Below, piece by piece: positions 20,535 to 53,967 of a stretch of DNA of 64,000 nt (positions are counted from its first letter, which is position 1; each line of letters starts with the position of its first letter). The stretch is from Paragordius varius (Eukaryota > Animalia > Nematomorpha): positions 7,688,001 to 7,752,000 of the forward strand of contig OZ176055.1 in the NCBI GenBank assembly GCA_964247055.1, written 5' to 3'. Under the pieces are notes generated by a model. That model ran no database searches. It saw nothing but the letters and a program-made list of their open reading frames with translations, and was not told the origin of the DNA. The translations under genes and the position numbers were made by a program.

Positions 20535-21485
20535 ATGCAGATTACATCAGGTACTGGGCTGGTGAAAATAACTGCTGGAGTTGTTGGTGCATTATTTGTT
20601 GGATATTGTTTTTATTTTGATAAAAAGCGGCGCAGCCATCCGGATTTTAAACGAAAATTACGCGAAAGTTTTTTAAATTTTATTGTTTAGAAAGGGCTAA
20701 ACAACGACAGATATTAGAAAATGGTAATGGCCTTGATATACCAGATATTCACGATCATGAAGCTATGCAGAAATTCTTTTTGCAAGAGATAACCAAAGGA
20801 GAGGAACTTATGATGCTTGGTTTATATTTCTTATACTATTATTCTTTATTGATATGATCCATCATTTAAACAATATTTTGTACAGGTGATATTGATTCCG
20901 GAATCGAACATTTAAGTTATGCGGTGGCTATATGTTCACAGCGGGAACAATTGCTTGGCGTGTTGGAGAGAACACTTCCTCCACAAATTTTTATCATGTT
21001 AGTTCAAAAATTACCACAAGCTCAAAAAGTTAATATATAGTTTGTTTTCTTAACCAAAGATATCTAGTACCCGTTGTGTTAAACCTTTTTCACGGATTTT
21101 AATCTAATATATATGTTTATTTTATGTTATTATGCTATAAATTACTGTTGAATATAATTTATTTTATAGACTGGTTAAACTGTTATATGCTTATTTTAAA
21201 TTATTATAAAGCTTTTTTTAATACCGATATCTGAGTTAACAAATGTTTAATACTTGGGTAAAATGTTTTTTGTATTCAACACACTTTTTTGCAAGTGGGT
21301 GCAAATTTGAAATTAATTATTAGTTTACGATATTTTTTTACCTATAGAAAATATTTGGAAAACTTTCTCCCACTGGTAATGCAAATACTAGTCTCAATGC
21401 TAAATTTTCACCGTTGGACATTGAAGAAAAATTGATTATGGATTCTCCAACGATACCCATTATATCTGAGGAGGATGTAGATTAA
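20535..21485 (+). CDS. TOMM20: Mitochondrial import receptor subunit TOM20
   Basis: Exons 20535-20667, 20691-20819, 20886-21028, 21348-21485 (introns 23, 66, 319 nt). Product MQITSGTGLVKITAGVVGALFVGYCFYFDKKRRSHPDFKRKLREKRAKQRQ...EAMQKFFLQEITKGEELMMLGDIDSGIEHLSYAVAICSQREQLLGVLERTLPPQIF...ISEEDVD* has the GYCxYFDxKRRSxPxF, QKFFLxEI and TLPPxxF motifs and the acidic C-terminus. Confidence 0.97.
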
Positions 21486-21558
21486 ACAAATATGTTTTAT
21501 TACTGAATTGATTAATTAAAGTTAATATTATCTCAAATATGAATACATTCATTGTATA

Positions 21559-21564
21559 AATAAA
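21559..21564 (+). promoter_or_regulatory. Candidate polyadenylation signal of TOMM20
   Basis: AATAAA 74 nt after the stop, followed by T-rich sequence; AATAAA is frequent by chance in such AT-rich DNA. Confidence 0.4.
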
Positions 21565-22351
21565 TGTTTTTACTGTACTATACTTGAAATGAATGTATAA
21601 TCCTTTGTTTTACAGTTAATGATTTTTTGATTAAACATTTTATTTTCGTAAAACATATATTGATTTGTTAAAGCTTAACTTGGCAAAGTGTGTAAATTTA
21701 TGTCAAATTATTTTACAAATTTTGGTACCGATTACATTTTTACTTTTGATTGCAATTTCAAATTGCAAACTACTTTAGTAAAAAATTCTTTCTACTGTTT
21801 TAAACAAAATTATAAATTTTGGTTTTATTACTGCATAAAACCCAAGAAAACATATAAAGTTTTGTACGTCAAAGGAAAAAACTAAATTAACAGAATGGCT
21901 CAAATGAATATGGAATGAGATATCTTTAACTTTTGTCCCATGTAACAATGTTAAAAGTTCAATTCAAAGAAATATCTAAAAATTTATTTGGTAAATGCCA
22001 TAATAAGGGACGTTACAAGTATCAATAAAAATGAAAAATAAATTCAAATATTATATATATATATCTATAACATATGGTCCAAATAGGTATTTTTGACTAT
22101 TGCGCAACTTTTATAAAATAAATTGTTATTTAATTGTTTACAATAATTATTGGCTATCTTGTATATTATGTTGATTGTTTTAAATAATATTTATACCATG
22201 TTGCAACAAATTAATTATTTATATATATTTATATAAGGCCTAAAATTACATAATTGAATTGCATTAATACGGGTTTTGGGGGGAATGTTTAATACTGCGA
22301 TACTCTCTAATTAAGCCTTGACTTTTGAAAAATACTATTTAGACACAGACA

Positions 22352-25300
22352 CTAAACCGAGGTTGGTTGGCATTTAGATATCCGTTCCCAAAAATGTTTT
22401 ACATTTGTATCATTGATACTCTTATGATTGTCTTGAGTTTTGTGAATTGGTAAAGAAGTAGTTTCCTTTACGAGCTGGTGTTCAAAAATATTTTGAGTGG
22501 TGGTCGTAACACTACTTATGGTATGTGTTAATGTAGTTATCGCTTCACAAAATTCCTCATCATTTTCGGAATCTTCATCATCATCAAGCTTGGCTATGGG
22601 AGGATTTTTACCCACTTGATTTTGAAATTTGTTATGTCTTGGTGCTTTTGTCATTTCTTTGGCGAGCAAATTATTTGAGAGGCCATTTTTGTTGCTAACA
22701 TAGTTGTTTGATAACTGTTTTTGATAACCAATAACTTCTGGAGCATCTGAACTGGCTGATAGCAAACTGTTTGGACTATCTATCCCTGATGAGGTTGATG
22801 AATGAGTCGTAATGTTGGAAACTGTCATATTCGGTTTAGAGTTGTTATCCTTTTCAAAATCGCTTTTGGTATCGATCATCAATTTCTAATTATTAAGGTA
22901 CAGAGATATAGAATAATCTGTTAATTATATTTTATACTAATCTTCAATTTTAAATGAACTGATACTTAAGCTAATGCTATAGTTTATTCAAATCGCCCCA
23001 AAAATTTATTCATACAATTGAATGTGTCCAACATTGGTTGTAATACTAAACTTTTTTGTTAAATGTTTGTAAACGTTATATAAGCGAAATTAATGCAATC
23101 AAGCAACTGATTTTGGCGAAATCGGTTGTAATTCATGGAGTAAAATAATGGATCGAGAAAAGGGTAAAATTAATAAATTTAGTTTAAAAGATATAATTAA
23201 CCAAATTAATTGGAAATTTGGTATCTGGATGATTACGGGGTCGTGACTCCCGCAAAGCTACCAAAATTTATCAATAACAAAATCAGCCCTGAACCTAATG
23301 TTAAAGAATATCTTTAATACAATATTAACCGTGAAATTTTTGTAAAAAAAGCTCTATTTTTGACTGAAATTAAACAGAATGATATGTAAAATTCGTCATC
23401 CATGTTTTAACCAGATTATTATGTTTACTCATGGGTAGGACAATGGTCACTATCATAGTGAGCGAATTTAATTATTTAGAACATAAGCGCCTGATAGGAC
23501 GCGGCGCGTACCTTTAACATAAAACGAGTTCGGGACAGAAACGATGGCATTGCATCCAGAAAATGTTTGCAAAAAAATCTATTGGACAAAAGCCGTCTTG
23601 TTTATTGTAAAAAAAGCTTAGACATTTATTTATGGCCGACAGTAATTATAATGACAAATCATCGACCACTCACCTCAATGACATAATCCGCAGAAAGGTA
23701 AAAAATCTTGTAAACTAAACGATTTAATATAAAGGTCTGAAATTAGCAGATGCTCTTTTCGTAATTCACATCTGTAAATCAACCAGTGTGTGCTAATCCA
23801 ATGGTCACCCATAAAATAAAAAGTATTTTGTAAAATGTTTTTTGCGAAAATATATATAAAATATGACTAAGGAATTACCAAATTTTTGTGTATCATAGCC
23901 TCATCATCTATCAACTGTGGATCAAAACTTATATCATGATTCAAATGGGGATATGATGGATATTGATTGGCCGTAAAGTTACAGTAAGGATTATTTGTTA
24001 ATTTTGGCTGTAAAATGCGAGGCATGTTAATGCCCTTAATTTTACCACCCATGTTACTTGATTCAGTACGACAGTTTTTATCGTTTGTTGTCATCTTTTT
24101 AGGTGACATTATTTGCGATCTTGAAGTATTTAGATACGAATCGTCTCCCTTCGAGTGTGGACTAAAAAATGTTAGAAAATTTAATATATACGTTGAGAAA
24201 TTGAATTTATCATTTTATTTTTACATTCGACAATAATTACTTGTAGTAATCGAAAATTCATGTTTTAAATAAACTCAAACAATGCTGAATTTAAATGATT
24301 AATATCTCGTAGGATTTTATGTAAGTTAATCTTCAAAATTAATGTAAATCATCTAAATATTATTAGACATTATAATATGAAGCTGAGCTGTTTCACCATA
24401 AACATAAAAATAAGTACGTTAAATTATATTTGATTACTTGTAAACTCTGTACTTTTCATCATTTTTTGATTTTTTCTTATACGTGAAAGCTGAAAATTTG
24501 TTTCGTCCAAACCAAAATAATTTGCGATCTAATATAATAATTTCAACATTATTTATAGATATTTCTTTTAATTAATTAAACACCAATAATGATAACAAAA
24601 ATTCATACCTAAGAAACTGTTCATGAAAAGTTTTGAATCTGGTTTAGATTTGCCTTTTTTATATTTATCCGCTGTTTCTCCCAGGTGATCTAATTCGTCT
24701 TTAGATTGAAATTCAGAATTGGCGGCGAGAGGCGATGTAGCCCGACCAGGTTTTATAAACATGGTGTAAAAGATGAAAACCATAAGTGTCAAAATCAGAC
24801 AAAGTACACAGAAGGCTGACGTTAAGAGGATTTTTCTAGAGCTTTCATTATTCCATACTAAAAAATATGTGTTTAAAAAATATTATTAATATAATTGATC
24901 ATTTATTTAACGCATTTTTGTTGTGTTTATCTTCAAGTTTTCGCAAACTTTCAATAAAAATACTAAGATTGGATAACAAAAAGGAATTTTTAACAAATAA
25001 AAAGTTATATAACATTAAATGTTCAAAATTTTAGAATGGCAACCTCTAGCGAACGTTCCTTGCGGTTCCACCACAATTATATCCACTAGGCTAGATCGGA
25101 TCATGCCAAACTCATTGTAAGCTTCACACATAATTTTTGGTATAAAATGTTTATTATTATTATTATGATGGGCCTTTTCAGAGTCCGACATCATGTTTTG
25201 GGGTAAAATCTCATTTCCAGTTATCTCGTGGTTATTTTGTATGTGACCCCTGTCCTGGTAGTAATATGAGGTGTATGGAGAAAATAATTCACTAACATTC

Positions 25301-27277
25301 CCAACCGAAAGATTTTGTCCATGACCAATTACGAAAAATTGACCTTGCGTTTCTGTTGGCGGCCGCTTGTTAGATGTAGAAACATCCTTCAAAATTAGCC
25401 ACCAAAGATATTTAGGGGCTGGATTGGCGTCGGCCCAGCAGCTCTGGAAAAAGGCCCCATCTCTCAGCACATGGATTTGGTTTGGCAATTTAGGTTCTGC
25501 AAGGATCGGAGCGTCTATTATATTAATTAGGTTTATAATACATTCTCATAAAAAATAGACCATTCACAACTCAAATTCCCCCCTGGTTCCAAACATTTCA
25601 AATTCTCTCCTTGAACATTTAAAATTCACCCTAAAAACAGAGTATGTGTTTTGGGGTTAATCTATCTTAGTATGATATCAAATATTTTTGTATGGCATAG
25701 TTTGTCATATTTTTTTGTATAATGTTAATTTCAAAAACTAGTTTTTTGAATATATCATCAATATATAAAGGTATTTTTTGATTTCCAACATTTTAATTAG
25801 TTTTTAAGGTAAATTCGAAATGTTTAATAATGAATTTAAAGTCAATAATAAATTTGAAGTCTAAATGGTTTATATATAGTCATATATATATATTTACATT
25901 TAATGTCTAGTAACAATGATGTAGCCCATTCTTTAACTTCGGTAGATTTTTGATTCTCAGCATCAATTTTATTTGCTATCTCATTAGAGTCTTGTTGTGT
26001 AATTTGATTTATTTTCTGTAGCGCTTTGCACCAAATAACCTTACCATTATGCCTTCTACCCAAACCCGTTATTTTGAGAAACGTGGTTATAGTTTGAGTT
26101 TGATTTTCTCCATGCATATAGTTGGCTTCGGTATTACCTGAAATGCGTGAATGAGGAGGGTAAGGGATGGATAACTTTGGTATAATTTGAGTTTCTAGAT
26201 CAGGATCAGTTTCCCACACAAGTTGTCCAAACGGGATTCCGGCTTTAGCCCTACAAGCTAATTCTAATTCCATCAATGTTTTATGTTGATTGATTCCAAC
26301 GCCATCATTTTCATTTTGTGTGTCATTGGGGGCATTCTTTTGTCCTTGTAGCGACGGGGTTTCTAACGGAGGCAAAACTAAGCTGATTACGGTTGACTTA
26401 ACTAATTTTTTGTTGCGTACATCATCGACCGGTCGACTATTACTTAATGGCACGACGAAATGGTTTACACTATTTAATGAATATCTTGATGGGACTTTGT
26501 AAGCTGTTATGAGTGGATTATCGCTCGGGACTAGATAAAACATGTCACAAATCATTTTATAACAACACAATTTGTAATACTTAAAAAATTAAAATATAAA
26601 CACAAATGAGAGATATTAATATACTTACCCATTTCCACCAACCTAACGGGTTGCGAAAAATATCCCAACGAATTCAATCGCACATTCTTACGTAAACCAC
26701 AAAAGTATAGCCCTTCATCCGAATGAGATGCATTTTTTATGTTTAGTGTAAATTTGCTGGAAACGTTAGCAATTAAAGATGTAAGACTCGTTTTGTTAGT
26801 TTTAATTTGGATTGGGTGTATATCGTTTCGATCCTTAGTGTTCACAGACATGTGCATAAAATTGGAATTTAAATCATGACCCGTATATTGATATGAGTTT
26901 ATGCTCCAAAATAGATTGGAAAATATCACTGGTTCTAACGTTGCTGTTCTCTCCGCATTGTCAAGGATTATGGAGTCAGTAATTATTTTGGTTGATAATT
27001 TTACGGGTAATTCACAATTTATGGTGATATTTTGACCAGCCTTAAAATACAATGTTTCAACAACAGATTTTTCTTTATCATTAAGCATGTTGTTGACCGT
27101 GGTGACTTGGTAATATTGATCCTCATTAGTTGGATATAAATTGTTTAAATGTCCCTTCGATATTGTTTGCAATACAGGATTACTAAGTGGAATGGAAAAA
27201 ACACCACCAGGGCATAAACAGATACTTGTTAGCAAGAGTAAAAGTAATTTCATATTAATAAATCGTTGGGCCATCAT
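22352..27277 (-). CDS. Immunoglobulin-superfamily single-pass cell-adhesion protein (3 Ig domains; Kirrel/nectin/CADM-like architecture), ~969 aa
   Basis: Phase-consistent exons 27277-26629, 26530-25898, 25514-25044, 24857-24609, 24528-24438, 24161-23879, 22885-22352. Signal peptide (MKLLLLLLTSICLC), V-type Ig (GQNITINC..FTLNIKNASHSDEGLYFCG), C2-type Ig (LELACRAKAGIPFGQLVWET..HNGKVIWCKA), third Ig (KYAP..SCWADANPAPKYLWW..IMCEAYNEFG), TM (ILLTSAFCVLCLILTLMVFIFYTMFI), long cytoplasmic tail ending PTSV*. Confidence 0.88.
25560..25850. mobile_element. Diverged MITE family A copy in Ig-gene intron 2
   Basis: accattcacaactcaaattc...aaattcaccctaaaa and internal tatggcatagttt shared with the other copies; right TIR decayed. 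Confidence 0.55.
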
Positions 27278-29200
27278 TTTAAGCTAACGGTTATATTTGA
27301 TTTAGATTTATAAATCTATGGCATAATATTCCGTTTTTTTAGCAAGATTGCTTGGCCCTTCATGATTGATTTTATTTCGTAATAGAATGAAGCAAATGCA
27401 AAAAAAAGATGTCGTTTCGTTATCTAGGGATGATGTGAAAAATAAATATTTGATTTAGTAAAATAATATAATAAGAAACATGATTATAAATAATGGAAAT
27501 TGTTGATAATTATAAAATATTATTTATTGATTGATTGATTATAATTTTTTATATTTATAATATTTTATATTTCATTTTTATACAAACAAAGACACTCTCT
27601 ACCATTGTTTGTTCATTTCATCAGAAAAAATTAATGTTATAAATGTCCGATGGAGGAGATTTAGATTTTGAATATAAAGAAAGACGAATCCCCATTATAT
27701 CAATAAAAACACGACACAGAACAAACACATATATTATTATGTTTTAATAGATTTTAATTGTCATATATATATGAATAATCCTATATAATTTAAGCTAGAT
27801 ACGTATATATATAAGCTATAAAAACGTAATTACGCATAATAATTACAGAATAACTAAGCCATATTTCCGTTATATTATCCTGTATTTCTGGGGTCCTAAT
27901 CCCTCTCTCTTTTCTTAATAAATCATACATAATGTTTTTTTGTATTAATATCATTATTATTGATCTATCTCTTCACATAACTTTTATTGCAGCAAAAAAC
28001 ATAAAAATGAAAAAATTGTTTTACCTGTAAAAAACTTTTGGTATAAATTTTAAGATAGAAAACTTATTTTGGAAAGGATAATATCCAGATTTCCCAAACA
28101 CTTACTTTTAAAAAACTTTACCAGAAAAAAAGTTGATGTAATTTTAATTTTTAAGCCATACTTAAACTATGGTGAAGTGTATGTATAGTTTCACAAATGA
28201 AATTTTTCATTTTTATCAAAGTAACTCGAGTACACACACAAATATCTATTTAGGTCAAAAATTATTTTTCATAGTTTGAGTTTAAGATATATTTTTTATT
28301 TTACTAGTTTGGTGGATTATATTGAAATAGGAAGAGAAATGCATATTTTCCAGGCAAACTTGTTAAAAAATTTAATTTTTTGCAAAAAATTATATACATA
28401 CAATTAGATAACGAAACCAGGTAACGTGAAAAGCATTAATATATCATTACTCCCACACACTTGAACTTTTTTAATTAATATTTATTTTTTACAAAAAAAA
28501 TTATTTATATTTAAAAAAAATTTACGTAAAAATGTAATATATGTCTATATGGATATGATAGAGTCAGAAACTCAAGGCAAAACAAACAATCAAGCCATAC
28601 TCTCATATCAAAATCGTGGCCAAATCAATGCGTATAGGTAACTTTAGAAAGGTGTGAAATAAAATTATAACTTTTTTTTCTTTTATTTAATTTTTTTTGC
28701 TAGAAAATGATATATTATTACATAATATATGTTTAAGTTAAAAAAAAAATTTTTCGATCAAATTTTATATATATTATACAAATATTTTTCATTGATAGGA
28801 GATAACAATAACGGTTATGATATTATTCTCTTTGTATTTTAAGGCTTATTGTATAATAAAACAAATTTTAAAGCAAAAATATTTAATTTTTAATAGATTT
28901 GTAACATATAAAATCTGACCTTTTGAATTGAGTAACTAAATTTACTATATATATATATATATATATATATTCAAGCCATATTTTGAATCTATCGTGTGCA
29001 AAACCTTACAGTTATATTAAAGGAATATTTTTAAATTCTCACTTAAAGCTTTAAAATATCTTGATTTTGTAAAAATTTAGTAATAGCAATTTTAGAAAAT
29101 TCGTTGAGAAACATTTATATTCTAATGGTTAACACTCAAAACAATCAATGAGATTAAATATTTTAAGTCTAAAATTTTATATAAATAATTATTAATTTGT

Positions 29201-29204
<4 letters not shown>

Positions 29205-29257
<53 letters not shown>
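29205..29257. repeat. (TA)n microsatellite (others at 28946-28970, 44612-44632, 51366-51388; (AAT)n at 33130-33155 and 40553-40572; (GT)n at 31861-31876)
   Basis: Directly visible. Confidence 0.95.
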
Positions 29258-29260
<3 letters not shown>

Positions 29261-37340: not shown

Positions 37341-40300
37341 TCAACATTCTGTTCCCAATATGTATTCATGTTTATAATCGTATTTGTAATTGAAATCGAA
37401 ATCATAGTATTGTTCGTAAAAAAAGATCAAATATGTTGCAGCCATTTCTTTCCAATTAGTTATGTCTACGTGGAAAAAGAGAAGACGTCACAATCAAGAT
37501 TAGGTCTAGCCCGGTTATGAATGCAATTCCGACTGTGACCGCTCTTAAAAATAACCTAATATCATGGTATTAACTAAATTTTAAAATACCACAATTTTAT
37601 TAATTGTCATTAATATTTCTACAATATCAAATGTAAGACTTTTTGTTAATCATCGAAACTATAAACTCTTACGCTGCTAATAAACTGCTTATGACTATGA
37701 ATTACTGCATTCTCAAGCATCAGACCGGTTTTTATATTACCACAACTAATACTATACAACTAAAACTCCAACTTTTAAAATTTAGCGAGGTATAATTGAA
37801 ATTGGTTAATATTTCTCGCATAAGCTCCACATCCATTGGTACTTGAACAGCTTTCCGGTCTACGCGATATCGCCAAGGGATAACATGGTAAATGTTGCTA
37901 TAATCTAATGTCACATATATTTATATATATTATTGTCATAAGCTAGTATCATACTTATTTTTAAAATAAATATAGAGTGTTTTTTCATATTTTAGTGTGC
38001 TTTACCATTTTACAAAGCTAAATGAAAACGGGGTGGACATGAACTATAATTTTATTTTTTGCTTATTAGCTACTTACTACGTTTTATTACCGATTTACAT
38101 TATTTTTACTAATAATAATTATAATTTTACTCAAATATATAAATTTTCTTCTGTAAAATATCATATTCATATGTATTTACCTATGATCCAATACATTATG
38201 AATCCAACCAATACAGCGAACGTAATTGCCATCATTATGATAACTCCAATCCGAACGCTATTTATTTCAGCCGTTAACATATGACAATCTAAAAAATGAA
38301 AATTATGTTTCTCATTCTTACAAATAAAATTTACCTCTGATTTTATGAATACTAATATCATTTTCCCGTAACTCCATCCACCGATAATACTGAATATGAG
38401 GGAAATGTAACAAGATTAATTTTTTTAAATCATCAGACACGTCTTTTTGAACGCCATAGATGTGTATATTATAAATATGTGTTGCGTTATCCTGTCTAAA
38501 AATGCCCTATAAAAATGTTGGGAAACTTGATTGGTTCCAAGATTGGGGGTGTTTTAATGTGTGTTTTAAGTTTATTTCTTATCTGAGAATTTAAATCGAT
38601 TTAAACCATGTATTCAATATAACTGCTAGTGTATTGTGATTCAATCATTTCGTATGTATAATAGATAAAAAACGGTCGAATTTCCAATCGATATACACAA
38701 TCAGCATCATCTATAAGTAAATTAAGGCATAATAATTCTTAAAATATTTACAATTTTGACCGTTTTTCCCATTAAATGAAGTAGACCGATTTCCCATGAT
38801 ATTTAATCTGCTTAATGTAGCAAGAAAACGCATATTTTGCAAAATAATATGGAACTTTTTCGCCCCACTTTTTTTCTTTTTGTTATGCATATAATCTGAT
38901 AATACGTTTAGTATAGAACCTAGATTGCTTTTTTATGTGTAAACTATAATTTATTTGATTACTAAAGTGTAAGATACCGATTACTAATATCATTCATTAT
39001 ATTGTATTAACGAAAATTTAATGGAATACGCTTAAAAATAACAGCTAAGTAGCACTTTTATTTGATCCTTTGAGCATTAGAGTCAATTTTATCCTTTAAA
39101 ACTTGGGTGTCCCACACGCTTTGTTCGGTATGCCAAAAGCGCTCTAAAGAATGTTAAAAAATAAAAAATTGGAAAAAATTTAGGATTTTTAAGAAGAAAT
39201 ATCTTTCCGAAATCGGCCTTAAAATATATTAAAAAAGGTATATGAATATTTCAATTTGAGAAGTATTAATGCAAGTTTAAGATATTATAACTCGATCAAA
39301 TGTGTAGGACATGCAATTTTTAAGGATGGAAAAAATTTAGAGCTTTCTTTAATATTATCATAGGTTTTGAATATCCTTATCCAAAAGTTAAGAATAATTT
39401 TATATTTTTATAATAAATTGTTTATTATTGATTCAAACTTAATTCTAATGCGGAATTGACATAGTAGGGTTTTCACGCTCCCCTTTTCTCTTTAATACTT
39501 GATAAGCTATAGCAATAGTAGCTCTTTAAAAAGTAGAAATAAAAATAGCCATTTATCCAACCAACCTCAACACTCTTTCATCCAAACTCAACACACACTT
39601 TTTCATTCAAACGTTTCGTTGATTACCAAATAGAGCTTTATTAAAAAATTATTAAACATTAAAGAACTCAATAAACATATCGCTTAATATTTAATTTTAG
39701 TTTTTTGCATTCAAATAGTTTTATCTAAATTCGCTTTAGTAAATTAATGAAATAGAAATTATATTTTAACGGAAAAATTTTATATTTTTGCAATTTTATT
39801 AATTAATATTAAATAAAAAACATCAAGATTTATAATAGTTGAAAGTTTAAAATGATGTATGAAAAAAAAGTATTTACATATCAACAGATTTTTTTTGGAA
39901 GTCATTTTTGTTATTCTTCATAAGAAATCTGGATTTTTTTGTATTATAAATGCGTCTAAGAATGTTGGAATCGGAACCGAACTGATACTTAAAAATTTTA
40001 AATACACCCGGTTTTCAATATTTATACAGAATTATGTTGGCTTTGATCTATTAGATATAATTTCTAAGAGGAACCATGGGGTTTAGGATATGTAGACCCT
40101 TCTACATGAACTACTCATTTAACGCATAAAATTAAGAAAATCTAATATTATGTAGTTGTATCCAAATATGAACATATTCCATACCTGTACAAACAGTCTT
40201 AGCCGAAAGATCAATTGAACATTGACAACGATAATCAACACATTTGCTGAATTGGGACACAAATTCACAATCTTGATCATTATTACAAGATTCATCATTG

Positions 40301-43300
40301 TAGTATGCTATTGATAAATGTAAAGCATGTGAATTTATGTTTTGTCTCCTTACAGTCAAAATAAATCACAATAATTATGATTGTATTTTCTCGTAATTGA
40401 ATTACAGAAAACTTACTAAATAATTGGCTGTTGCTATATATATAATAATGCCCAGTCACGCGACGTCGAAATAAGCACTGTCACGCATCTCTTCTTAATC
40501 GAAGAAGGAGTCATGGAAATTGGGTTCACATTTTTTTATTTATTTGGTGCAATTAATAATAATAATAATAATAGTTATTATTTCTTTAACTTGATGAACA
40601 TCCTTATATGTAAATTTTGCTAGGTCCAATTTAGATTGAGGGATTCATAACACTCCTTAATATTTAAGTAATAGTATGGTAAACCTATATTTAAAATAGA
40701 TAATTTCGCACAACCTTTATTTTATAATAAAATCTCTATGTTATATGTCCTCGCACATAGAACCAAAATACAATATTAATTATTTGATATATTGGCCGGT
40801 TAAAGCTTTATATACATACATTATTGTATAAATTTTTCATTTCATATTATTTTAAGCCCAAAATTATATTTTTAAATACATTGATGTTTTGTCGTTTTTA
40901 GTCCAGCTTTCAGCGCAACATAACATTATAAGAAAATATTAATAAATGAAATTCCTTTTGTTAGTTTGATATCAGGAGTTTTCCATAAAATTTTGTTGTA
41001 TTTAACATTTGTTGTTCTCTTTATCATTATTATTAGAAACTTAATAGAAACATGTATTGGATATTTAAGTATTTGGGTTTCTAATACTTTTGATAAATAT
41101 TGTGTTAGCGAATTTCACACAATTTTCGAAACAATGGTATGCCAACTTTCCGCATTTGACTGCAAAATGATTAAAAAATCATTTAACTGGATAATCAAGA
41201 TATCCTATGACTATGAGGAATGTGATTTACCCAGCAATATTGAGCCTGTATCTATTGTTGATTTTCTCAAAATACTTTTTAAACATTCATGGGTGAATGA
41301 ATACAACTTTGGCATAATTTTTTAACATTTGGATTGCTAGTGGTGATAGATATTTTAAGTATATAAGGTGAAGACTGTATGATTATTGATTTGTAGGCGT
41401 GAATACGTAGTCAAAGAGAAGACGCGAAAGGTACTCAGCCGATTAATTAAGCATATTTGACCCAATGATCATGCGAATTTTGTGCCTTAAAGAAATTTCA
41501 TGGTACCCGCTTTTCTTAATCATCAAAAGAAAAAGGCGAAGCCATCGTTTGCTAGTGGAAACATTACATAAACGTGCATCGATTAATGCAAAAAAAATTT
41601 TGGAAATTTAAAAATGATTTTATTGTAAAGAGATTTGCAGAATCATGACATATATCACAAAAACATCAACAGGCAATGATCAATAATCTCAATGAGTCAC
41701 ATGCATAATAAACACGATAAAGTGTCTCTTTTTTAGATTCAAATCGGTAAATATTGTGGTTTTCACCTATCCTAGCCGAGTCCATTAACCAAAAACACCC
41801 ATATCATTTCGGCAAGACTATGCTCTGTGTCTCTTATGGAACCTGATCAATATCAATATTACTAACTTTAAAAGCCCCTTTAAATTGTTATTGCACATCG
41901 CCGTCGCCGTTATTTTTATTTAAAACATGGCCTTAATAAAAATGGCAGCAATGGGCTTAACGGCATCTCTAATAAATTTCGCTACAGGACAATGCTCGTC
42001 ACACAGCAAAACTAGTGCGTTTTGAAATCACTTAAACATTTAATTCATTAGCATCCACCGTACTCCTGGCCCAAAGCCAACTAGTACCATTCAGCACCAA
42101 TAAATCGCTCGAAGAACATTACTATAATAATATCGAAAACGTTGGAAAATGATGATGCATGGTTTGCCCCAAAAAATAATCAGCTTCTAAGGCATGGCAT
42201 TTATATATATGAGAGATAGGCGCATAATGTAGAATCCTCCAGAAAGTATTTTGAATAAAACTAATATTTGAATCCCCTTCAATGCATGTTTTATGATTCC
42301 TTATCTATATAGAAATGGAAAGTGGTGGCTTTGTGATCTGTTTCCGGAAAACCGGTAGACCCATTCAAATCCAAATATCGAAAAAATATAATCATTAACG
42401 AATGTCCCGACAATAGCTTCGCCCTTTTTAATTAGGCCTCCAGTTCGGGCCCACCCCGTGTAAAAAACGGTTTTTTTGAAAACAGAAATTTACAAAATCG
42501 TGTCTTTGAGACAATTTTCCGAAAAACGTGTTGGACGATTCGCTTTTAAATATGATTTTTTTTACTTATTTTCGAGTGTCCGAACATAGTGGGCTCGCTT
42601 TTTTGATTTAGGCCCTCTTTTTAGCCGTTCCTCCCATAAAAAGCCATTTCGAATTGCCCACAAAAATAATTTTTTGAATCTATTTTCCCCAATGGTATGA
42701 GACAATAAAAATTCATTAGCATTCCAGGTATTACCTTTTAAAAGGCAAAAATTTTAATCATGCGTTTCCTTTATATTGGCTGCTGAGTAAGGAGATACCC
42801 GCTAAAAACTGCCCCGTCATATCGAAATAGCGTGCCTTTGGGGCTAAATTTCAGAAAATTTATCATGCCATATGAGTTCAATAGCTGCTTAAAATATTAC
42901 CCGTATCAAAGCAAAAATTTAGGTCATGCGATTTTTATAGCCGTTAATTAGGCCCTTCACGCCCTAACTGCGCCACCATAGAATAATTTTTTCGTTTTGA
43001 GGCAATTTTACCGAAAACATATGGATCAATCATGATCAGGTATCTCCGTCAATAGTCAAAAATTTTATTCAAGCGCTCTTTTCCTCTGGTTAGTGAGCTA
43101 CTCACCTAAAACTGCATCACCATATTTAAATTGCGTTGTTTAGGAGTTAATTTTCAGAAAACTTATCTGGCCATATAAGTTTAATAAGGGCCTGAAATAT
43201 TACCCGTAAAAAGGCAAAAATAGTCGAGCGGTTCTTTTTAATTACCCTTTAATTAGGCCCTTGCCTTAAATGCGCCACCATAGAATGACCTTTTGGTTTT

Positions 43301-46300
43301 GAGGCAATTTTTCCAAAAACTATTAAGAATATATGGAATGAATGATGATTTCAGGTATTCCCATATAAAGGCAAAAAATATTATCGAACGTCTTTTTTAT
43401 ATTGGCCTTTGGGTAGGAGGCTACCCGCGTAAAAATGCGTCACTATGATACAACATGCCTTTGGAGCCAAATAGAAAACCTATGAGACAATGTAAGTTAA
43501 GAGCTTAAAATATTTATTACCCCTTAAGATACAAATATTTTAGACAGGGGTTATTTCAATGAGTCGCTAAGAAAAGTTTTAAGCCCTGAAAAATGCGCCG
43601 CCATAGAACAATTTTTAGTCTGAAAGCAACGTTTCCAAGAAGTTATGGGAACATACGGAATCCATAATAAATTCAAGATCCCCACATAAGGACAAAATTT
43701 TGCCCTACGCTTTTACCTTTTAAGTAAGGAGCTACCCACACAAAATTGCGTCACTATATAAAAATTGCGTTGTTTTGGAAATTTACAGAAAATTTACAAG
43801 GCCATATGAGCTTAATTAAAGTTCCAAATATTACCCGTAACTAGGTAAAAATTATGGTCAGGCGTTTTTGCGTTAATTTGGGGCTTTTAAGCTAAAAAAA
43901 TACGCCATCATATAACGATTATTTAGTTTTGAGGTATTTTTTTGAATAACCCATGAGACGATGGTATTAAAGATGATTCCAAACCCTATAAGGGCAAAAA
44001 TTAACTTAGCGCTTTTTCCATATAGGTCTATGGGTAGGTGTTTACCGGCTTAAAACTGAAAAACCATATAAAATTGGAGTGGTTTTGGAGCTAATTTTCA
44101 AAAAACCTAAGAAGTCATACGATGTCAATAAAGGCTTTACAATATACCCATAAAAAGGTAAAAATTATAGTATATTTTTTCCGTTAGCCGTCAATTTGGG
44201 GCCTTCACACCAGTAAACAATATATACCATTTACAGTTCAAATTCACCCTAAAAATAAATTATGTGTTTTAGGGTCAATATAACTTATTATTAATTTGGA
44301 CTATATCTTTATTGCATAGTTTATTATTTTTTCAGTATTATTTTAATTTAAAACAAATTTTTTTAAAAAAATATATAAAAATATAGGTAATTTTTAATCT
44401 TAAAAAACATATTATTTATTTGAGGGTGAATTTGAATTGTTTAAGGGGGAATTTGAATTATAAATGGTATAACTGTTATGAAGCACCGTTTTGAAAGCTT
44501 ATAAGATCATAGCTATTAAATAATGTTTCAAAATAATCCACATATATAAATCATTCCTTCCCACAAAGTCCGGACTTCCTCGGGCTGCGTAGCAGTACGA
44601 GATTTACGCTAATATATATATATATATATATACATGTATACATGTATGCGTGAAACACATTTGTGCTTTCGAGAGCATAGCAAGACTGATTTTCCCGACG
44701 CTTAAATATCACTGTCGCAAAAATGATTTTCTTTGATTTTCTATTAATCCATCGGATTACAGATCATATTGATTTATCCCTGATATTTCCTGAATCCAGT
44801 TTGTTCGCAAAATTTTCAGTGTTGATTGTCCCTTTACGATTCGAAAGAGAGAACTTTCAAAACATGATTGTTTAGGATATTGTTCGATAATCAGAGTATC
44901 GATCGCTTATTTCATATACGCAATTTTGGAGTAAAAATTGTAATAGACTGTGCGGCAAAAATGCGGATCAAAAAATAAATATCATTTGATAGCTAAAGCT
45001 TCAGGATAATGAATATTAAAATGATATATGAGGTTAAAATACTACAAACAAGTTATTTTGAGTTTTCTGTTTAGCCAAAATAAATTTTTTTCCATATTTG
45101 GTCACATCTCAATTTTATATGTTCTAATATACCATTGGATAATTTTAAACGCAAAATATTACAAAAAAGATTTTACATTTTTTTGGAGGTTTCCAGAAAG
45201 ATTATCATAAATAATAGTAAAAAACTCACTTTATCGTTTTGAATCATAAAAACTTGGTGAAGGCAGTAAAATCTTTGATTTTATCAAAACATTCATATAA
45301 AACCTCTATATATAGACTTTACACAATATATGTAAATTTTTATAATTCATTGAATATATATATATATTATTAATGTCTCATCACAATTCGATACAGAAAA
45401 AAGATCTTATCATCTCAGGTTTTTGATTTAGGGATATTTTTACTTAAATATTTTGTGGCGCCATTTTAGCTTCTAATACAGGCTTTAGGGCATACCTTAA
45501 AAAACCTGTGTGGATAGATCGTTTTTTCTGCATCCAATTGTGGAAAAGAATTTATAATGTATATATTGAATGTATTTTAAATGTAGCTTCCGCTTTGGTG
45601 CAAATTATTGAAAAATTTGTTTAATAAGATTATATGATTTTAAAAAATTAAAATCATTTACACCACCTTAATAAGTGTTATGTTTCAAATTTGACGCCAA
45701 AGTCCGATTTTTAAGCTTACATTCTCGTAAATCTTTCTGGAGCCCTACGAAAAATGTTAAATCTTTGTTGATAATATTTTGCGTTTAGAATTACCCTTAT
45801 GCTATATGAAAACAAATAAAATTTAGTTGACTTTTCAATTATCGTATTTAATTTTATTTGATCTAATATGCGAAAAAAATGCGATTTTTTGATTTATATA
45901 ATAGCATAGATTAATCTTTTCCAGTATTTTAATCGCATATATTATTTGATTCATTCATGAAGTTTTTAGCTACCAGATATATAATTCATTAACATTTATT
46001 TCTTGCTAAGCATCGTAAGCGTAGTATGGTTTAATAGGGATATCATTCATCTAATAGATTAATAGGTCCACTAAAATATAACCGGTTGGACTTCTTGTGT
46101 TATAAATGGCTAATAAATGTATCGATTTTTGCTTTTAAATCCCTGGAACTGTAAAACTTGCGAGCCACTCTTCCCTGATTTGCACATCTTTTTTCTATGG
46201 GATTTTCCCTCTTTTGTTATTCTAGGACCTTTGTACATTATCTCAGGGTCGGATGTGGTTTTAATGAGTAAGAATATTATTGTTTTTAGCTTCGTTTTAG

Positions 46301-49300
46301 CATTAATGAATATATGTCAATTTATTAACTACAATTTTATTTTCCAACTGAAGACTTGTGTTGTACTTATGCCAGCTTGCAAAATTAAAATAAACCAAAG
46401 AGTAAAATATTTAATTTAATGTGCATTTTGTTTCACCCATATATATATATACAATTATCATAAAAAGGCTTAAAAGCATAAAGTTTTATTATTTATTTGT
46501 AGGTGTAATGTATTGCAATAGATTCACCGTCAATTAATATTTGAATGTATTTATCTTCTTCAATTTATTGTCAGTTTTATTATCCGGAAGAAATTCTATC
46601 ACTCAGAATTATAATTACACATAAATTATTTCTACAGAACATACAACTCCAAAATTTTCATCGACAATTTTATTCCCTAAAAACCATTCTTAAACATCAG
46701 TGGACATATCATACTGATTCTTTGATTCTTATATCTCAATACACCACCACTAAACTAAATTCCTACATGGAAAGCAATAATTCTAAAATAAGCTCCCGTA
46801 ATTTAGAAATAAATATGGCCACCTGGAACACTCGTGGCACTTCAGATAACAAATTGAATATAATAATTCGCGAGATGAAACGTTTAAACATCCATGTGTT
46901 AGGGCTGTCGGAGACTCATATGCAACAACACAAAATATACGACAATTACTCGTTTTATAACTCGGGCGGTGAACTCAAACCAAATAAATGCGGTTTCTTA
47001 ATATCGAATAATCTTGCCAAACATACTGATATATATAGACCTATTTCCGATCGAATTATAGCCCTACGAATTAACACCAGACCCCAGGCTATAACAATAT
47101 ATCAAATCTATGCCCCCACGAGTGTCTCACCCGAAGACGAATGCGAAAAGTTCTATAATGAGTTACAAATGGCTCTCTGTGAAACATCCATGAAAGACAT
47201 AACTTTCATCATCGGCGATTTTAACGCTATCATAGCTAACGATAAAACAGACAAGGTCACTGGTGGAAAAGGCCTTGGTAAAGTCAAAAACCCCCATGGT
47301 GAAAGGCTAATTAATTTTTGCCAACAATCATTCTCTTTATAGCGAACTCGTTTTCAAACAACCTAACAGACGGCTCTACACCTGGACCTGACCGTGTCGT
47401 AAACACAGGAATCAAATATATTACATATTGGGAATGCAATAATACAAGCTCATTTCAAAACATCCGGTGCTACTCGAGTGCATGCAACTCAGATCATAAC
47501 CTATTAATGCCAAAATCAAAATAAAGCTACAACTTCCCCAGCCGCAAAAAAACTTTTCCAAAACTAAATTGAACTACAAACTTATACCTGCCGATTTTAC
47601 GCCAATCCTTAACAAAAATTTGAATCCCTAAAATACGAAACATAGAACACAGATGATCTTTGGTCTACTATTTACAAAATTACCACCGAAACAGCTAAAG
47701 AATATATACCGCCTGCCACAACAAAAAACAAAAATTTTACCATATCACAACAAAGCATCGACCTAATTGTATAGAGAAGAGTAGCAAAATCCAAGGGCAC
47801 TCCCCTTGAGTACAAAAATATTAATAATGAACTACAAAAAAGCATAAGATCCGACAAAAAATCTCATTATAATACAATCTGCGCTAACCTAGAGCAAGCT
47901 GCTAAACTTAATCACAACTACTTCTCTTATATTAAAGGCATTCAACCGCGCAAAAAACAAATGTACAAAGGTCCTATGTCTCATTCAAACGGAAAACTTC
48001 TAACCGATAAAAAAGGAGTAATTAAACTCTGGGAAGAATACATCCAAAATTTATTCTCAAAAATCAAATACAATCGCCATGAACTCTAAACAAACTTATG
48101 ACCCACCTATACTAAAAGAAGAAATTGAATAGGCCCTGAAGCATTCATCAACCGGCAAAGCAGAAGGATTCAATGATATCCCTACCGAGTTACAACGGCA
48201 CATTCCCTTAAAATTAATTCCTTCGTTATTTCAAAAAATCTTCAATGAGGCAACATTCCCGACGGACTGGAACAAATCACTAGTGGTCCCTATATTCAAA
48301 AAGGGCGATCCTAAACTATGTAAAAACTACCGTACAATAGCATTGATTTAGAGAAAAAAAAGGATGCCGAGACATGATTTCAAACCTTAGATGGATAATG
48401 GAAAAAAACTGTGAATTCCAAAATGAGCTACACCTATGTTTCGTGGATTTCTCTAAAGCCTTTGATACCGTTTAACATGACATTCTCTGGAAGGCCCTTA
48501 AATAAATAGGATCCGATCACTTAATCAAACTAATTAAATCCATATACTCCAACTCCTACCTATCACTTAACACCCCGCATGGCTCGACCTCTTGGAGCCC
48601 AATTAACATAGGTCTGCGTCAAGGCTGCATTTTATCCCCCATGTTGTTCAACATATATTTGGAATGTATCATAAGGGATCTAAATCTGCCAGGAATAAAA
48701 GTAGGGGATCACACTCTGACGACTCTCCACTAGGCAGACGACACGGTTATCTTAGCAAATTCACAAACAAACCTCGAAAACAGTCTCCGAACTTTTATAA
48801 ATGTGTGCAAAAAAATACAATCTTACATTAAACCTCAACAAAACTAAAATATTGCATATCAACTCCTCTCATTTCTATGACTCGCTTCGGATTAATAACG
48901 GAACAATTCAAGTAGTCAACGAATACACATACCTTGGAAGCATTATCAACAACTCAAGCTCCAGTTCCCAAGAAATAAGAAGACGCATAGCTATCGCCAA
49001 ATGCGCTCTATCCTCACACTGCAAGTTATGGAAATCTCATGACATAACCCTTAAAACAAAAATCCGACTAGTAAATGCATTAATTTTTCTTATCATGTTA
49101 TACGGATGTGAAAGCTGGACTATCAAAAGTGGAGACGAAAAATGAATAAACGCTTTAATGTTTTGCTGGAGAAAAATACTTGGTATAACATGGAAGGACC
49201 AAATAAAGGACATCGACATTGTAAATAAAATTAAGGCACAAACAACGCTTCGGGGTAAAATAATAAAACAAAAATTCGTTACTTCGGACACATTATTCGG

Positions 49301-52300
49301 GGCAATTCTTTGGAAATATTATGTTAGGAAAAGTAAATGGTAAGAGAGGAAGAGGATGCAGACGTATTCGCTGGGTAGACGAAATCTTATTTCCAAATTG
49401 TCATTGCAAAAACTATCTCAAAAAGCTCACGACAGAACCGAATGGAGGAAGTTTTCCTACAAAATCGCTAATGGTCGATAACCGACTACAAGCTCAACAA
49501 AAACAACAACAACAACAGGGACCAGTTTCCATTTAATCGATTATTTGGTTTTGTTACCGATTTTTTCTCATCTTCTCTATGACGTTTATTAAATCCTTAA
49601 GTGGGAAAACTTTGCGAAAAGAGATTAATATAGGTAAAATGTAACATATAATCAGATAATATATATTAGGTGTTGTTATTTCGTGTAACATAAATATTTT
49701 AGGCAGGTATTTATTGCTTAATTAATCATGATTATTTTTATAGGCCTTTGCTTTAATTAAACATTAAATTTTAAGGAATATTATTTTAGGTGTTTTGTAC
49801 TGAAAATTTATCAATGTTTTAAAATATTAAAAATTGAATATTGAATAATCTATAAAGGTTTTTTCTATTATGTCAAAATTTAACACATTATTGACTGCCA
49901 AATTATCTTTAAAAGTATTAAAATTTTCGATAATCCATGAAATATGGCGCCAATGCTACAATCCAAATTAGATTGGAACTTTATCGAATGAATTTTAAAA
50001 ATGTTTTTTTTTAATTTTTGTATGCTTTACCACAGAGCTTAAACTTGTAAATAAACCACTATATAAAAGTTGTTTGGATAAAAAATTAATTATATAACAT
50101 TGTTTTCTGCATTTAAAAATTACATATTTTTAGTATATAAATAAATCCAAAATTGAAAGCTTAAAACCCGATTTTAAACAGCTGACAAAATCATAACAAA
50201 TTATTTTTTGCAATGCTTCTGATAATTTTCTAGAACTGATAGCCATAATATATTTTTTTGCGTGCTGTATTAGCGATTAAAAAAATAAAATAAATGTGGC
50301 GAAAAAATTTGATACGAGGATGTTTAAACATTTGACGTGACTCAAATTTTTTTGAATATAGGTGCCTAAACGGATGAAGGATGCAAATTTTAGAACCTGG
50401 CCCAATATTCTGTTATAGTTTCTGGAATTTTTAAATTTAACTCATTTTGGGTATTAACAAAAGGTGATGTAGCCTTTAATGTGATCACCCAGCATATGTT
50501 AAATTTTATAATTGCTTAACAGCTTCTTTGCGTCTATATTATATAACTTTTGCACAATTCAAAAATATGCAAATATGTTTAGTTTTCGAAGTATAATTTA
50601 TAATAAATTTTTTTTATCAATATTAGCCTGTGCTGATATTGTCTAAATCGTGTCTACGAAAATTTTGTAAATATTTTATCAATACTTTATCTTGTGTTTT
50701 AAACTGATGTTAGAATATTAAAAGCGCCAGATTTTAACACTGTATGTGTGTAGAGTTCTAGAATTTTAAAACTTCGCATTTTCCCATCATCACTGTCATT
50801 TAGCCGTGGTCCGAGAGTCTCACACAAGTCCTGTTTAATTTGGGTCTTTACAAAAAGAAAAAGATGTATATTATATTTGTAAACTTTAATATCAATTTTC
50901 ACAAATATCACAAGGCTGAATGTGATTTATATAGGCTTAAGAGCGCAAGGAATTTTTAGATGTGTAATTAAAATGATTTTAAAATTATAAATATAATACC
51001 TAATTTACAGTTTAAAGATGTTTTGTAGGGACATGCACAAAACCCATTTTCACAAAGGTAGGCGCATGAATTTGAATCTTTGCATCGTTTTCCTGGCTGC
51101 TTCATATCTAAAGCTTAAAATTTTATTTTCGTTAGTATGCCAAATTGTGTAAAATTTGGAGTTTAGGCTTTTTTACAAAGTATTAACTTTGTCCAAAAAA
51201 TGAAAAGTAGTTTGAATAATAATTTAAGAAAGATAAACGTTAGCATCTTAATAAAAATATTTTATTTAATTAACGAGCGCATAAGCTTCGAGAAAGTGTA
51301 ATATATATTTTAATTAATTACGATTCATGCCTCTAAACCAGTTCACTAATGATTTAATAATATAATATATATATATATATATATATATTCTGATAGATAT
51401 TTTAATGGTGGCTGTGGTTTTAGACCTTGCGGGTTATATAAGAAAGTTACTTGTGAAATTTGCTGCATTTCAAAAAAATACTCAATCGCAAAATCAGAAA
51501 CAATTTTTTGATGAAAGCTTAATACTTAATTCCTGAAAATATCAATTATACAAAATTTATATTTTACAAATATGCCCTAAAATCCAATTTTTGGACTCGC
51601 TTAAAACGGGCCAGTTTTTAAACTAAAAGCAAACTTGCCAATATTGCGCGTTAAAAATTTTAATCTAACAAATTTTTACATCAAAAAAAGTTATCTTGAT
51701 TTAATGTCCTTAAAAATTTAATTTATAACAAAATTCTGTTGATAGGCGATTTATAATATTTAAAAATATGGTTAAGTTATTAACTTTTTGGATAAAATTT
51801 AATGTTAACGAAATATCTATAACCTCATAATTTAAATTAGAATATGAGTTTATCTATAAATTAAGTTATAAGTTGTGTTTTAAAAAATCATATGATTAGG
51901 TGTTGAATTTAACTTCAAAGAGTTTTTTTATCATAAAGTATTTTTATACCGTATCTATCCTTTAAATTTAATATAATTTCACTTTATCAATTTTTCATAA
52001 ATATATTATGAAAAAAAATTTCGGAAAACACCTTTTTTTGATTTTACCCTATATTAAAATTTTCATTGAACAAAATTTTCGTCTTTATTTAAGAAAACTG
52101 ACCCAATTTAACGGGTAAGAAAATTAGGGACTTTTGGCTCCCACAAGGTATTTAAAATAGATAAATATACTGTTTTGATATTGCATTAAATATTTTATAA
52201 AATTTATAGATAAATTATTTTTTCATAGAGTTTTTATTACTCTGATATATCACAAATGGACATTTGTTGTATATTTTCAGGGAAGACCATTTTTATAAAA

Positions 52301-53967
52301 ATAATGATAAAGAGGGCGCATAATAAAAAATCATATTATACAAAGTTTTTAGGTGGAATTATAATTTTTGTTTTAAAATTCCTGTTAAAATGATGGTTAA
52401 TATCAGAAAATGCAAAAAACTTGAGTGGCAGTAAAATTTGTTGTCTAGTGTAATAGACTTACATTGTTTCAAAACAGTGTGCCAAATTTATAGTCCAAAT
52501 TTAGTTTTTAATTTCGTATTAATTAAGTTAGCAATTTTCAGTACACAAAAATTTAGGGGTCACGTTCCACCTTTGCAAATTATTTGGTATATTAAAATAG
52601 GCTTGTGTTTCAATAGTTTACATTTATTAGGTAAAACGTCTTAATAAATCAGATTTTTTTAATCAAAAAAAGTATTTTATAATTTTTTTTAAAAATCATG
52701 GGTATAGTATTACTTTATTCGAGCTTAGTTTTTTTAGCTTATATACCATTAAATACAACTCCGTTTGTTAACAAAGGTAGGAAAAAAAATATAATTTAAA
52801 TTTAAGCAATATTAAATATTTATATTTTACATGTAATATATACTTTATAAAAAATAATTTTGTAATTTAGTTTGATTTAAACACAACTATTAATTCCATC
52901 CCAGCGAAACATATGTTAAACTGAAATAAAGAAGCTTGTGTCCAACTATGATTTTTTAAATCCCTTAGTAATAATAACCCCCCATAAACAAATTGTTACG
53001 AAATTTTATGAAATTTTAAAATCCAGATTTTCATAATAGAGATTTTTATAAATGTCGGAGCTGATATACAAATTTTCTAAATGCAACCTATCCCTATTTA
53101 TTTTGGCTGAAAACTGGTGAGCTCTATGGGAAAAATATAAAATTAGATGTTTTTGATATCGAATTTGATATATTAAATATAAACGGTGCGACCTGAAACT
53201 GTAGTTTAAATATTTTTTAAGAAAAATAAAAGAATCATGTAATCTTGGTATATTTTTATATCAGAATTATATATATTATATGTATATCATCAAGATATTT
53301 TTTATCTCTCGGTTTTGTGGAATGAATAACCTAAATATCTAATGAATAAATTTTATGGAAAAATATATTGAATCGTTTTTATATGAAATAAAACATTTTC
53401 TCTGATATTGCAAATTCAAAAAATAGTGATCTAAAGATTTACCTTTTGTTAAACAAAGACCATTTACACAATCATAAAAGGTAGGACATTCATAAAATCG
53501 GCAATTTAAAAAGTCTACAAGTTAAAAAAATGGATACGAATGCACTCCTTTGTTTGACATTGACATTTTTTATCACATTTTCCAGTTAGGCATTCTATAT
53601 GGCTTTGACAGGGCGTATTAACATTTTTTTCTAATTTGCCAAATAAAATACATTAAACTATTGGCGCATTCACCATTGATATAATACTGATAAGTATCAC
53701 AAACACAACTATTATTTAAACAATTATTGGTAAGACATTCATAACTTGAAGTACACTTGGAATTATACGGTTTTTCTGAAACTTTAGAGACACAGATATA
53801 CTTGATTGGCAAGTTTGGTTCAGCGAATAAAAATTTTCTTTGCACAAGCATTTATTACCTATTTTCCAATCGCAAATTTCATTTGTTTTGCAATCACTGT
53901 TAAATTGACAGCTAAAAATTATAAATGGTAAGCAAATAAGTAGTGCATAAAAAGATATTGTTAACAT
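37341..53967 (-). CDS. Uncharacterised type I membrane protein with Cys-rich EB/EGF-like modules (~330 aa), interrupted by ultra-short introns and a putative ~13-kb intron
   Basis: Proposed exons 53967-53802, 53775-53659 (or from 53781), 53630-53538, 53514-53443, 40307-40185, 38288-38181, 37904-37831 (or 37843), 37759-37673, 37555-37492, 37465-37341. Signal-like MLTISFYALLICLPFIIFS; modules CQFNSDCKTNEICDWKIGNKCLCKENFYSLNQTC, CTSSYECLTNNCLNNSCVCDTYQYYINGEC, CQSHIECLTGKCDKKCQCQTKEC, CRFYECPTFYDCVNGLC, CNNDQDCEFVSQFSKCVDYRCQCSIDLSAKTVC; TM IGVIIMMAITFAVLVGFIMYWII. All ectodomain introns are phase 1. Linkage of the 53-kb and 37-40-kb blocks and the cytoplasmic exons are less certain. Confidence 0.7.
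41480..42270 (+). pseudogene. Mariner (Mos1-like) transposase relic
   Basis: HFGKTMLCV (~41805), LQDNARHTAK (~41980), HPPYS (~42052), WFAPKN (~42160), RKYFE* (42241-42258), in mariner order with frameshifts; TIRs not confidently identified. Confidence 0.8.
42304..44612 (+). mobile_element. Non-autonomous Helitron, second copy, with five ~310-bp units and a nested MITE
   Basis: A|TCTATATAG 5' end; hairpin CTCGGGCTGC-GTA-GCAGTACGAG (44579-44601) 11 nt before the CTAA|T end; unit motif at ~42791, 43095, 43416, 43728, 44039. Confidence 0.8.
44225..44469. mobile_element. MITE family A copy nested in the Helitron
   Basis: TIRs taccatttacagttcaaattcaccct / gaatttgaattataaatggta; absent from the homologous site of the 34037-37212 copy (taaacaatatattagtatgaa). 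Confidence 0.85.
44670..44960 (-). mobile_element. Possible LTR-retrotransposon integrase-core relic
   Basis: Minus-strand KFCEQTGFRK and SDGLIENQRKSFLRQ resemble the integrase core (FC..LGI.K ... QSDGLVERFNRTL); very decayed. Confidence 0.35.
46500..49517 (+). mobile_element. Near full-length degenerate RTE-clade LINE (AP endonuclease + RT) with (CAA)n tail
   Basis: Endonuclease MATWNTRG..LGLSETH..SDRIIALRI..IYAPTS..IIGDFNA; RT GLRQGCILSPMLFNIYL, ADDTV, YTYLGSII..EIRRRIAIAK, MLYGCESWT, MLGKVNGKRGRG..RIRWVD; tail caacaacaacaaca at 49495-49517; multiple frameshifts. 5' boundary approximate. Confidence 0.93.

Follow-up and report, generated by a model that had tools for sequence, protein, structure and literature searches.

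Evidence for a discrete minority class of 19-31-nt introns beside ordinary and very long introns in the repeat-rich genome of Paragordius varius

The window analyzed in the present study, which is a stretch of 64,000 nucleotides (nt) from the genome of Paragordius varius (C6:7688001-7752000 in assembly G000, which comprises 110.6 Mb in 44 contigs), carries a TOM20 gene, a gene for a secreted cysteine (Cys)-rich protein with EB-like modules, and a gene for an immunoglobulin (Ig) V-set membrane protein. In the first two of these genes, segments of 23 to 28 nt need to be removed for the genes to be read (Table 1), and these micro-introns belong to a discrete size class that recurs genome-wide. 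The window consists of AT-rich animal DNA with a GC content of 21-36% per 2 kb, the value over 277 kb (the window and 20 random 10-kb pieces) being 27.9%, and tRNA and Rfam searches of the window gave no match. A similar GC content, 26.9%, has been recorded for Gordionus montsenyensis, and the sizes of four hairworm genomes in a 2024 preprint are 200-300 Mb. The genome is rich in transposons and repeats and is not compact. Exons were searched singly against protein sets.

Table 1. Positions in the window of the gene features discussed in the text (position 1 is the first letter of the window).
Feature	Position	Strand	Remarks
TOM20 gene, 4 exons (20535-20667, 20691-20819, 20886-21028, 21348-21485)	20535..21485	+	Exons match human TOM20 and Pfam MAS20
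TOM20 intron 1, 23-nt GT-AG micro-intron, phase 1	20668..20690	+	Human TOM20 collinearity, conserved site, independent DNA run
TOM20 intron 2, 66 nt, GT..AG	20820..20885	+	Matches to MAS20 positions 55-90 (exon 2) and 91-132 (exon 3)
TOM20 intron 3, 319 nt, GT..AG	21029..21347	+	Read from sequence
Ig V-set membrane-protein gene, intron 1, 98 nt, GTAAGT..AG, phase 1	26531..26628	-	V-set domain in exon 1
Cys-module exon of the Cys-rich gene, 123 nt, phase-1/1, after the long intron	40185..40307	-	Read from sequence
Probable 10,692-nt transposon-filled intron	40308..50999	-	Contains LINE remnant
Broken non-LTR retrotransposon/LINE (APE endonuclease and reverse transcriptase), located within the long intron in antisense orientation relative to the host gene	46545..49533	+	Exo_endo_phos 1.2e-7, RVT_1 1.8e-6
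Probable extra 114-nt phase-1/1 exon, EB-like Cys module (…CKDSNSCAYLCENGFCACPYKTSLNC…)	51000..51113	-	EB match C6:7739016-7739105, 19.7 bits, E 0.11
Probable 2,329-nt intron	51114..53442	-	Donor GTAAAT at 53442; acceptor AG 51115-51114 before phase-compatible module exon
23-nt GT-AG micro-intron, phase 1	53515..53537	-	Contains TTTAAC, A 8 nt from 3' end
28-nt GT-AG micro-intron, phase 1	53631..53658	-	Between two Cys modules
26-nt GT-AG micro-intron, phase 1 (20 nt with the upstream AG)	53776..53801	-	Joins two Cys modules in frame; contains CTCTAAAG
Exon 1 of the secreted Cys-rich gene with EB-like modules: signal peptide and first Cys module; ATG 53967	53802..53967	-	Read from sequence

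The first intron of TOM20 is the strongest of the micro-intron cases in the window. Its sequence, GTTTTTTAAATTTTATTGTTTAG, begins after 133 nt of exon 1, and reading through it leads to a stop 7 codons on. When each exon was used separately as a query against PDB sequences, exon 1 was found to end at human E40 and exon 2, past the split codon, to start at R42; therefore, the exact removal of 23 nt is gap-free relative to the human protein (residues 40-43). The last exon ends in ...EEDVD*, which we take to resemble the C-terminus of human TOM20. A Pfam profile search detected one MAS20 locus in the whole assembly, and TOM20, being single-copy, is thus not represented here by a broken spare copy.

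The position of this intron is ancestral. A search of TOM20 exon 1 against 1.84 billion representative proteins returned many short proteins of the open reading frame (ORF) type, which match TOM20 as far as '...LRE' and diverge after S or R. This divergence corresponds to the reading of N+GT, meaning that a phase-1 intron is located at the same codon in many animals. The intron at the same site is 68 nt long in L025 and 72 nt long in L027, the two loci that were fetched. The identity of the nearest TOM20 representatives is 76% or less, and some of the matches to exon 1 look vertebrate. A separate homologous-protein search with the exon-1 ORF gave no match.

Sequencing runs were examined over positions 20400-26399. 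Two of them, X1 and X3, are DNA runs covering introns as well as intergenic DNA in this stretch, and the other two, X4 and X5, were guessed to be RNA. A contig of X3, which originates from a different study and carries a different organism label, is identical to 20565-20833 with the 23 nt included, and an assembly error is therefore excluded for TOM20. No contig of X1 or X3 skips the 23 nt, and these contigs offer no hint of an excision of this segment at the DNA level. This is of relevance to the proposal that the segments are removed or skipped by a process other than splicing, namely, precise somatic DNA elimination, in a manner similar to the internal eliminated sequences (IES) of ciliates, or translational bypassing. 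Short Paramecium IES and yeast-mitochondrial bypass elements, at ~26-55 nt, are of similar sizes; however, the ends of the present segments are GT..AG and not TA..TA, the TOM20 segment is located at an ancestral spliceosomal intron site, and the excised form was found in neither of the two DNA runs. We regard such a process as extremely improbable. As a separate observation, one X3 contig fits the window as far as 20690, the last base of the intron, and continues with 104 unlike letters (GTAAAATAAAGTATTTTCAT…); it may be a variant or paralogous fragment in the organism of that run (organism B).

The removal of the three micro-introns of the Cys-rich gene restores the reading frames of its modules. 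The exons of this gene are symmetric phase-1/1 module exons, and all four micro-introns visible in the window are in phase 1. Exon 2 weakly resembles an EB module of the nematode type (17 bits). Two tandem acceptors are present 6 nt apart in the micro-intron closest to the start of the gene (…CTCTAAAG followed by TTTCAG), such that an intron of either 20 or 26 nt may be read; both are in frame and differ by two codons. The initial annotation listed five micro-introns, of which four (23 nt in TOM20; 26, 28, and 23 nt in the Cys-rich gene) were confirmed at their positions with GT-AG ends, and the fifth, a second 26-nt intron, was not located. The only candidate for the latter, at 25570-25545 (-), was rejected as unsupported, since it needs an exon that opens with a stop in the required phase. 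The longer introns of 66 and 319 nt in TOM20 and of 98 nt in the Ig gene were verified and are bounded by GT..AG.

Genome-wide, introns were inferred from adjacent exon-level Pfam matches that belong to one gene and lie in different frames. To obtain the length of an intron, the overlap in hidden Markov model (HMM) positions was multiplied by three and added to the DNA gap, and the length modulo 3 is exact from the two start coordinates. Among the 154 pairs that were parsed by hand (Pkinase, Cpn60_TCP1, Ras, UQ_con, Proteasome, RRM_1, and Arf), 30 introns (19%) were 19-31 nt long, 3 were 32-52 nt, 17 were 53-99 nt, and 104 were 100 nt and over. Within the shortest class, lengths of 25 nt (seven introns), 23 nt (six), 22 nt (four), and 26 nt (four) were the most frequent, with the mode being at 23-26 nt. 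A trough separates this mode from the longer introns, as indicated by densities per nt of 4.25 at 23-26 nt, 0.14 at 32-52 nt, and 0.3-0.5 at 53-99 nt. Approximately 18 further pairs from Tubulin and DEAD genes contained no micro-introns. As judged from sequence, the micro-intron class is real and discrete, but a minority of introns: the median is several hundred nt, with 30 of the 154 introns at 31 nt or less, and not the median of less than 30 nt by which the myxobolid and dicyemid type is recognized. The view of the initial annotation, in which a non-compact genome carries a discrete short class together with introns of ordinary and very large size, is thus upheld by the near-emptiness of the 32-52-nt range (3 of 154). 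The initial annotation also stated in advance that the lack of a peak below ~40 nt would refute it, and this peak is present in the homology-inferred histogram.

These lengths also need to be considered in relation to the possibility that the micro-segments are artefacts, i.e., assembly indels, pseudogene lesions, or mis-modelled junctions. All length estimates are consistent with the residue modulo 3 derived from the frames, and frameshift errors are therefore not their source; such errors would produce lengths that cluster near 1-2 nt, whereas those observed cluster at 19-31 nt. The probability that four frame-restoring segments all carry GT..AG by chance is P ~4e-11 at this base composition. 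In addition, the identical TOM20 stretch in an independent DNA run and the single-copy state of TOM20 argue against an artefact. Although the runs that hold this stretch are DNA runs and one of the five claimed micro-introns was not located, both of which are in line with an artefact, this explanation has already been refuted for the most part, and we consider it to be very improbable.

We conclude that the micro-introns are very probably true spliceosomal introns of the U2 type with GT-AG ends, the size of which has decreased to a minimum of 19-31 nt, mostly 23-26 nt, that is specific to this lineage. Several points weigh against this conclusion. The genome-wide lengths are estimates from HMM coordinates, which are exact modulo 3 and possibly off by multiples of 3, and the GT-AG ends were read for the four micro-introns of the window. 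Statements on the branch point rest on the same four introns. The runs X4 and X5, which carry the label of this species, contained nothing from the window stretch; since the runs that hold this stretch are DNA only, the splicing of the micro-introns is what we infer. An ab initio test, in which ORFs were joined over 277 kb at GT-AG or at decoy dinucleotides and codon usage was either filtered or ignored, revealed no excess of GT-AG at any length; this test was powerless because the background was ~20 per length bin and the exons of TOM20 itself failed the coding filter, and its outcome does not count against the class.

The signals within the four visible micro-introns are sparse. Their 5' splice sites are weak (GTTTTT, GTATAT, GTTTAA, and GTATCC, or GTWWNN), and A residues are found 8-9 nt from the AG in the contexts TTTAT, CTAAA, and TTAAC. 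The CTAA/TTAAC-like motifs that had been described for two of the micro-introns were confirmed as CTCTAAAG and TTTAAC, 7-11 nt from the AG. The branch adenosine is probably located ~8-9 nt from the 3' AG, with a pyrimidine tract that may be almost nil, and the micro-introns are probably recognized by intron definition and would be removed from the RNA by an otherwise ordinary spliceosome. They lie in the same genes, and presumably in the same pre-mRNAs, as introns of 50 nt to more than 10 kb, and many of the long introns of these genes appear to be transposon-inflated.

The core machinery for branch-point recognition is present in the assembly. Matches to U2 small nuclear RNA (snRNA) numbered 46, and the four copies that were aligned retain GTGTAGTATCTGTTC, which contains the branch-point-binding GUAGUA box. 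The U2 genes, together with many degraded copies, form large clusters (C3:257000-528000 and C2:11950000-11988000), and the copies comprise two sequence variants, which differ in their stems and not in the branch-point box. An exon matching the SF1 helix-hairpin (SF1-HH) is located at C5:3070526, and exons of the U2AF large subunit (U2AF65) are collinear at C8:1375939-1380291. The only U12-like match (C5:10606517-10606667 (-)) is full-length, but with 34 bits it stays below the threshold of 53; divergence or loss of the minor spliceosome is possible.

According to the mechanism suggested in the initial annotation, the spliceosome may be reduced or modified, its U2AF, SF1, SF3b, or U1 contacts being altered, and a special short-intron mode would operate beside normal exon definition. 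A distinct mode of recognition could yield a micro class as sharply bounded as the present one, with a near-empty range of 32-52 nt, and the weakness of the four 5' splice sites listed above and the sub-threshold score of the U12 match are compatible with it. On the other hand, no sign of a reduction was found, given a canonical branch-point-binding region in four copies of U2 and the presence of SF1-HH and a collinear U2AF large-subunit locus. Myxozoans with introns of 22-27 nt likewise retain canonical U2 and U2AF1/2 (PMC13644364). None of the present observations demands new machinery, and we consider a modified spliceosome to be unlikely, although subtler alterations in the contacts of U1, SF3b, or U2AF may exist.

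Another suggestion was that selection keeps the micro-introns at lengths that are not a multiple of three (non-3n), or stop-containing, so that their retention triggers nonsense-mediated decay (NMD). In Paramecium, the introns of which are ~25 nt long, the depletion of 3n lengths is tied to NMD. The four visible micro-introns in the window are all non-3n (23, 26, 28, and 23 nt), and the estimated genome-wide proportion of 3n candidates, 10 of 44 (23%), is below the neutral 33%. However, neither figure is significant: the five out of five non-3n introns originally claimed correspond to P=0.13, and ~10 candidate 3n micro-introns versus 34 non-3n introns to P=0.089 from a count that is biased against 3n. 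Pairs in different frames reveal only non-3n introns, and 3n candidates were accordingly sought among matches that stay in frame, contain internal stops, and exceed the expected length by 21-33 nt. The count is biased because 3n introns without an in-frame stop are invisible to this method, and 3n introns are consequently under-counted. The candidates are ~21, 24, 27, 30, and 33 nt in size, with those of ~24, 27, and 30 nt occurring in the Ras, E2, proteasome, RRM, and Arf families. A class that is free of 3n lengths and enforced by NMD was not borne out, and we find no basis for the inference on NMD; 3n lengths may be mildly depleted, and we regard selection of this kind as unlikely.

The micro-introns are concentrated in small-protein genes. 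Ras, Arf, E2, and RRM genes contain 30 micro-introns among 86 introns, whereas CCT, kinase, proteasome, tubulin, and DEAD genes contain none among their 86 (Fisher P=9e-11). In several small genes, all introns are micro-introns, for example, 29, 28, and 23 nt at C2:7964739-7965373; 22, 22, and 19 nt at C5:5361143-5361730; and 25 and 25 nt at C1:7335342-7335709. A micro-intron comes first in six of eight mixed genes, including TOM20 (23, 66, and 319 nt) and the Cys-rich gene (26, 28, and 23 nt, followed by kilobases). Two intronless Arf-like genes on different contigs (C10:1742354-1742869 and C11:1307069-1307584) gave identical scores and lengths, and may have arisen either by recent duplication or from a haplotig that was left uncollapsed.

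The long intron of the Cys-rich gene was originally described as a single intron of 13,135 nt (53442-40308). Both of its splice sites are sound, and a long interspersed nuclear element (LINE), a retrotransposon without long terminal repeats (LTR), lies between them; nevertheless, it probably represents two introns of 2,329 and 10,692 nt, because an exon with an EB-like module, of phase 1/1, is found at 51113-51000 and fits between those on either side. This exon is phase-compatible with both of its neighbors and is probably included in the mRNA. Four EB-module matches at C6:7753145-7755157 (+) lie in a neighboring 'receptor' gene just past the end of the window. Regarding exon 1 of the Ig gene, neither a homologous-protein search nor a search for encoding contigs gave a match.

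In a survey of 51 animal genomes, the only animals reported to have introns of less than 30 nt were myxobolids (Henneguya, Thelohanellus, and Myxobolus), for which they have been documented by long-read RNA, and Dicyema japonicum, for which they have been reported (Hadjez et al., Mol Biol Evol 2026, PMC13644364). The median introns of these animals are 22-27 nt, their genomes are described as compact, their U2 and U2AF are canonical, and the shortening of introns in both groups of parasites has been tied to genome reduction (PMC13644364). The present introns are similar to those of myxobolids and Dicyema in being GT-AG introns of ~20-30 nt that occupy conserved positions in an animal, cluster within genes, and possess weak splice-site motifs and a few A residues just upstream of the AG, with canonical U2 and U2AF being kept. 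In contrast to these animals, approximately one-fifth of introns are micro-introns, with the remainder ranging between 50 nt and more than 10 kb in a transposon-rich genome.

Bimodal intron lengths have been described in neodermatan flatworms, such as tapeworms (Tsai et al. 2013) and Gyrodactylus salaris, the modes of which are at ~32 and 58 nt (Hahn et al., GBE 2014, PMC4040987). A discrete micro mode beside longer introns, a mean intron length far above the mode, and an uneven placement of short and long introns according to their rank along the gene are shared with these flatworms. The lineage of the present animal appears to be a different one, and the short mode of G. salaris, at ~32 nt, is above the classical floor of 30 nt, whereas that in the present study is at 23-26 nt within a class of 31 nt or less. 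Similar intron sizes and minimal internal signals are also found in ciliates, such as Paramecium and Stentor, with introns being 15-16 nt long in the latter (quoted in PMC13644364). Nearly all introns are tiny in ciliates and 3n depletion is established there, in contrast to P=0.09 here from a count that under-represents 3n introns. We did not find a published animal in the literature that combines a sharply bounded class of 19-31 nt with introns of 50 nt to more than 10 kb. A mode of less than 30 nt, a minority and bimodal pattern, and a repeat-rich genome are combined in the present case.

The present results have a practical implication for annotation, since gene finders that disallow very short introns would break or frame-shift genes with micro-introns. 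We guess that failures of this kind could contribute to low BUSCO values, such as the 71.6% reported for Gordionus.

From an evolutionary point of view, we tentatively entertain the possibility that an ecdysozoan-like animal outside Myxozoa and Dicyemida evolved introns of less than 30 nt without genome compaction. Some of its genes (those for small GTPases, E2 enzymes, RRM proteins, and TOM20) would carry a strict class of ~25 nt, which in other genes would be used at the front, with kilobase-sized, transposon-filled introns in the same transcripts. If this is the case, one spliceosome would accommodate two recognition regimes separated by a forbidden zone of ~32-50 nt, and gene-specific forces, such as the expression level, germline expression, or position in the transcript, would decide which introns collapse to the minimum. 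The presence of the same size class in a repeat-rich genome with introns of more than 10 kb would separate the miniaturization of introns from the compaction of genomes, and the coexistence of both regimes in one organism would make it possible to test which geometry is minimal for a spliceosome in animals.

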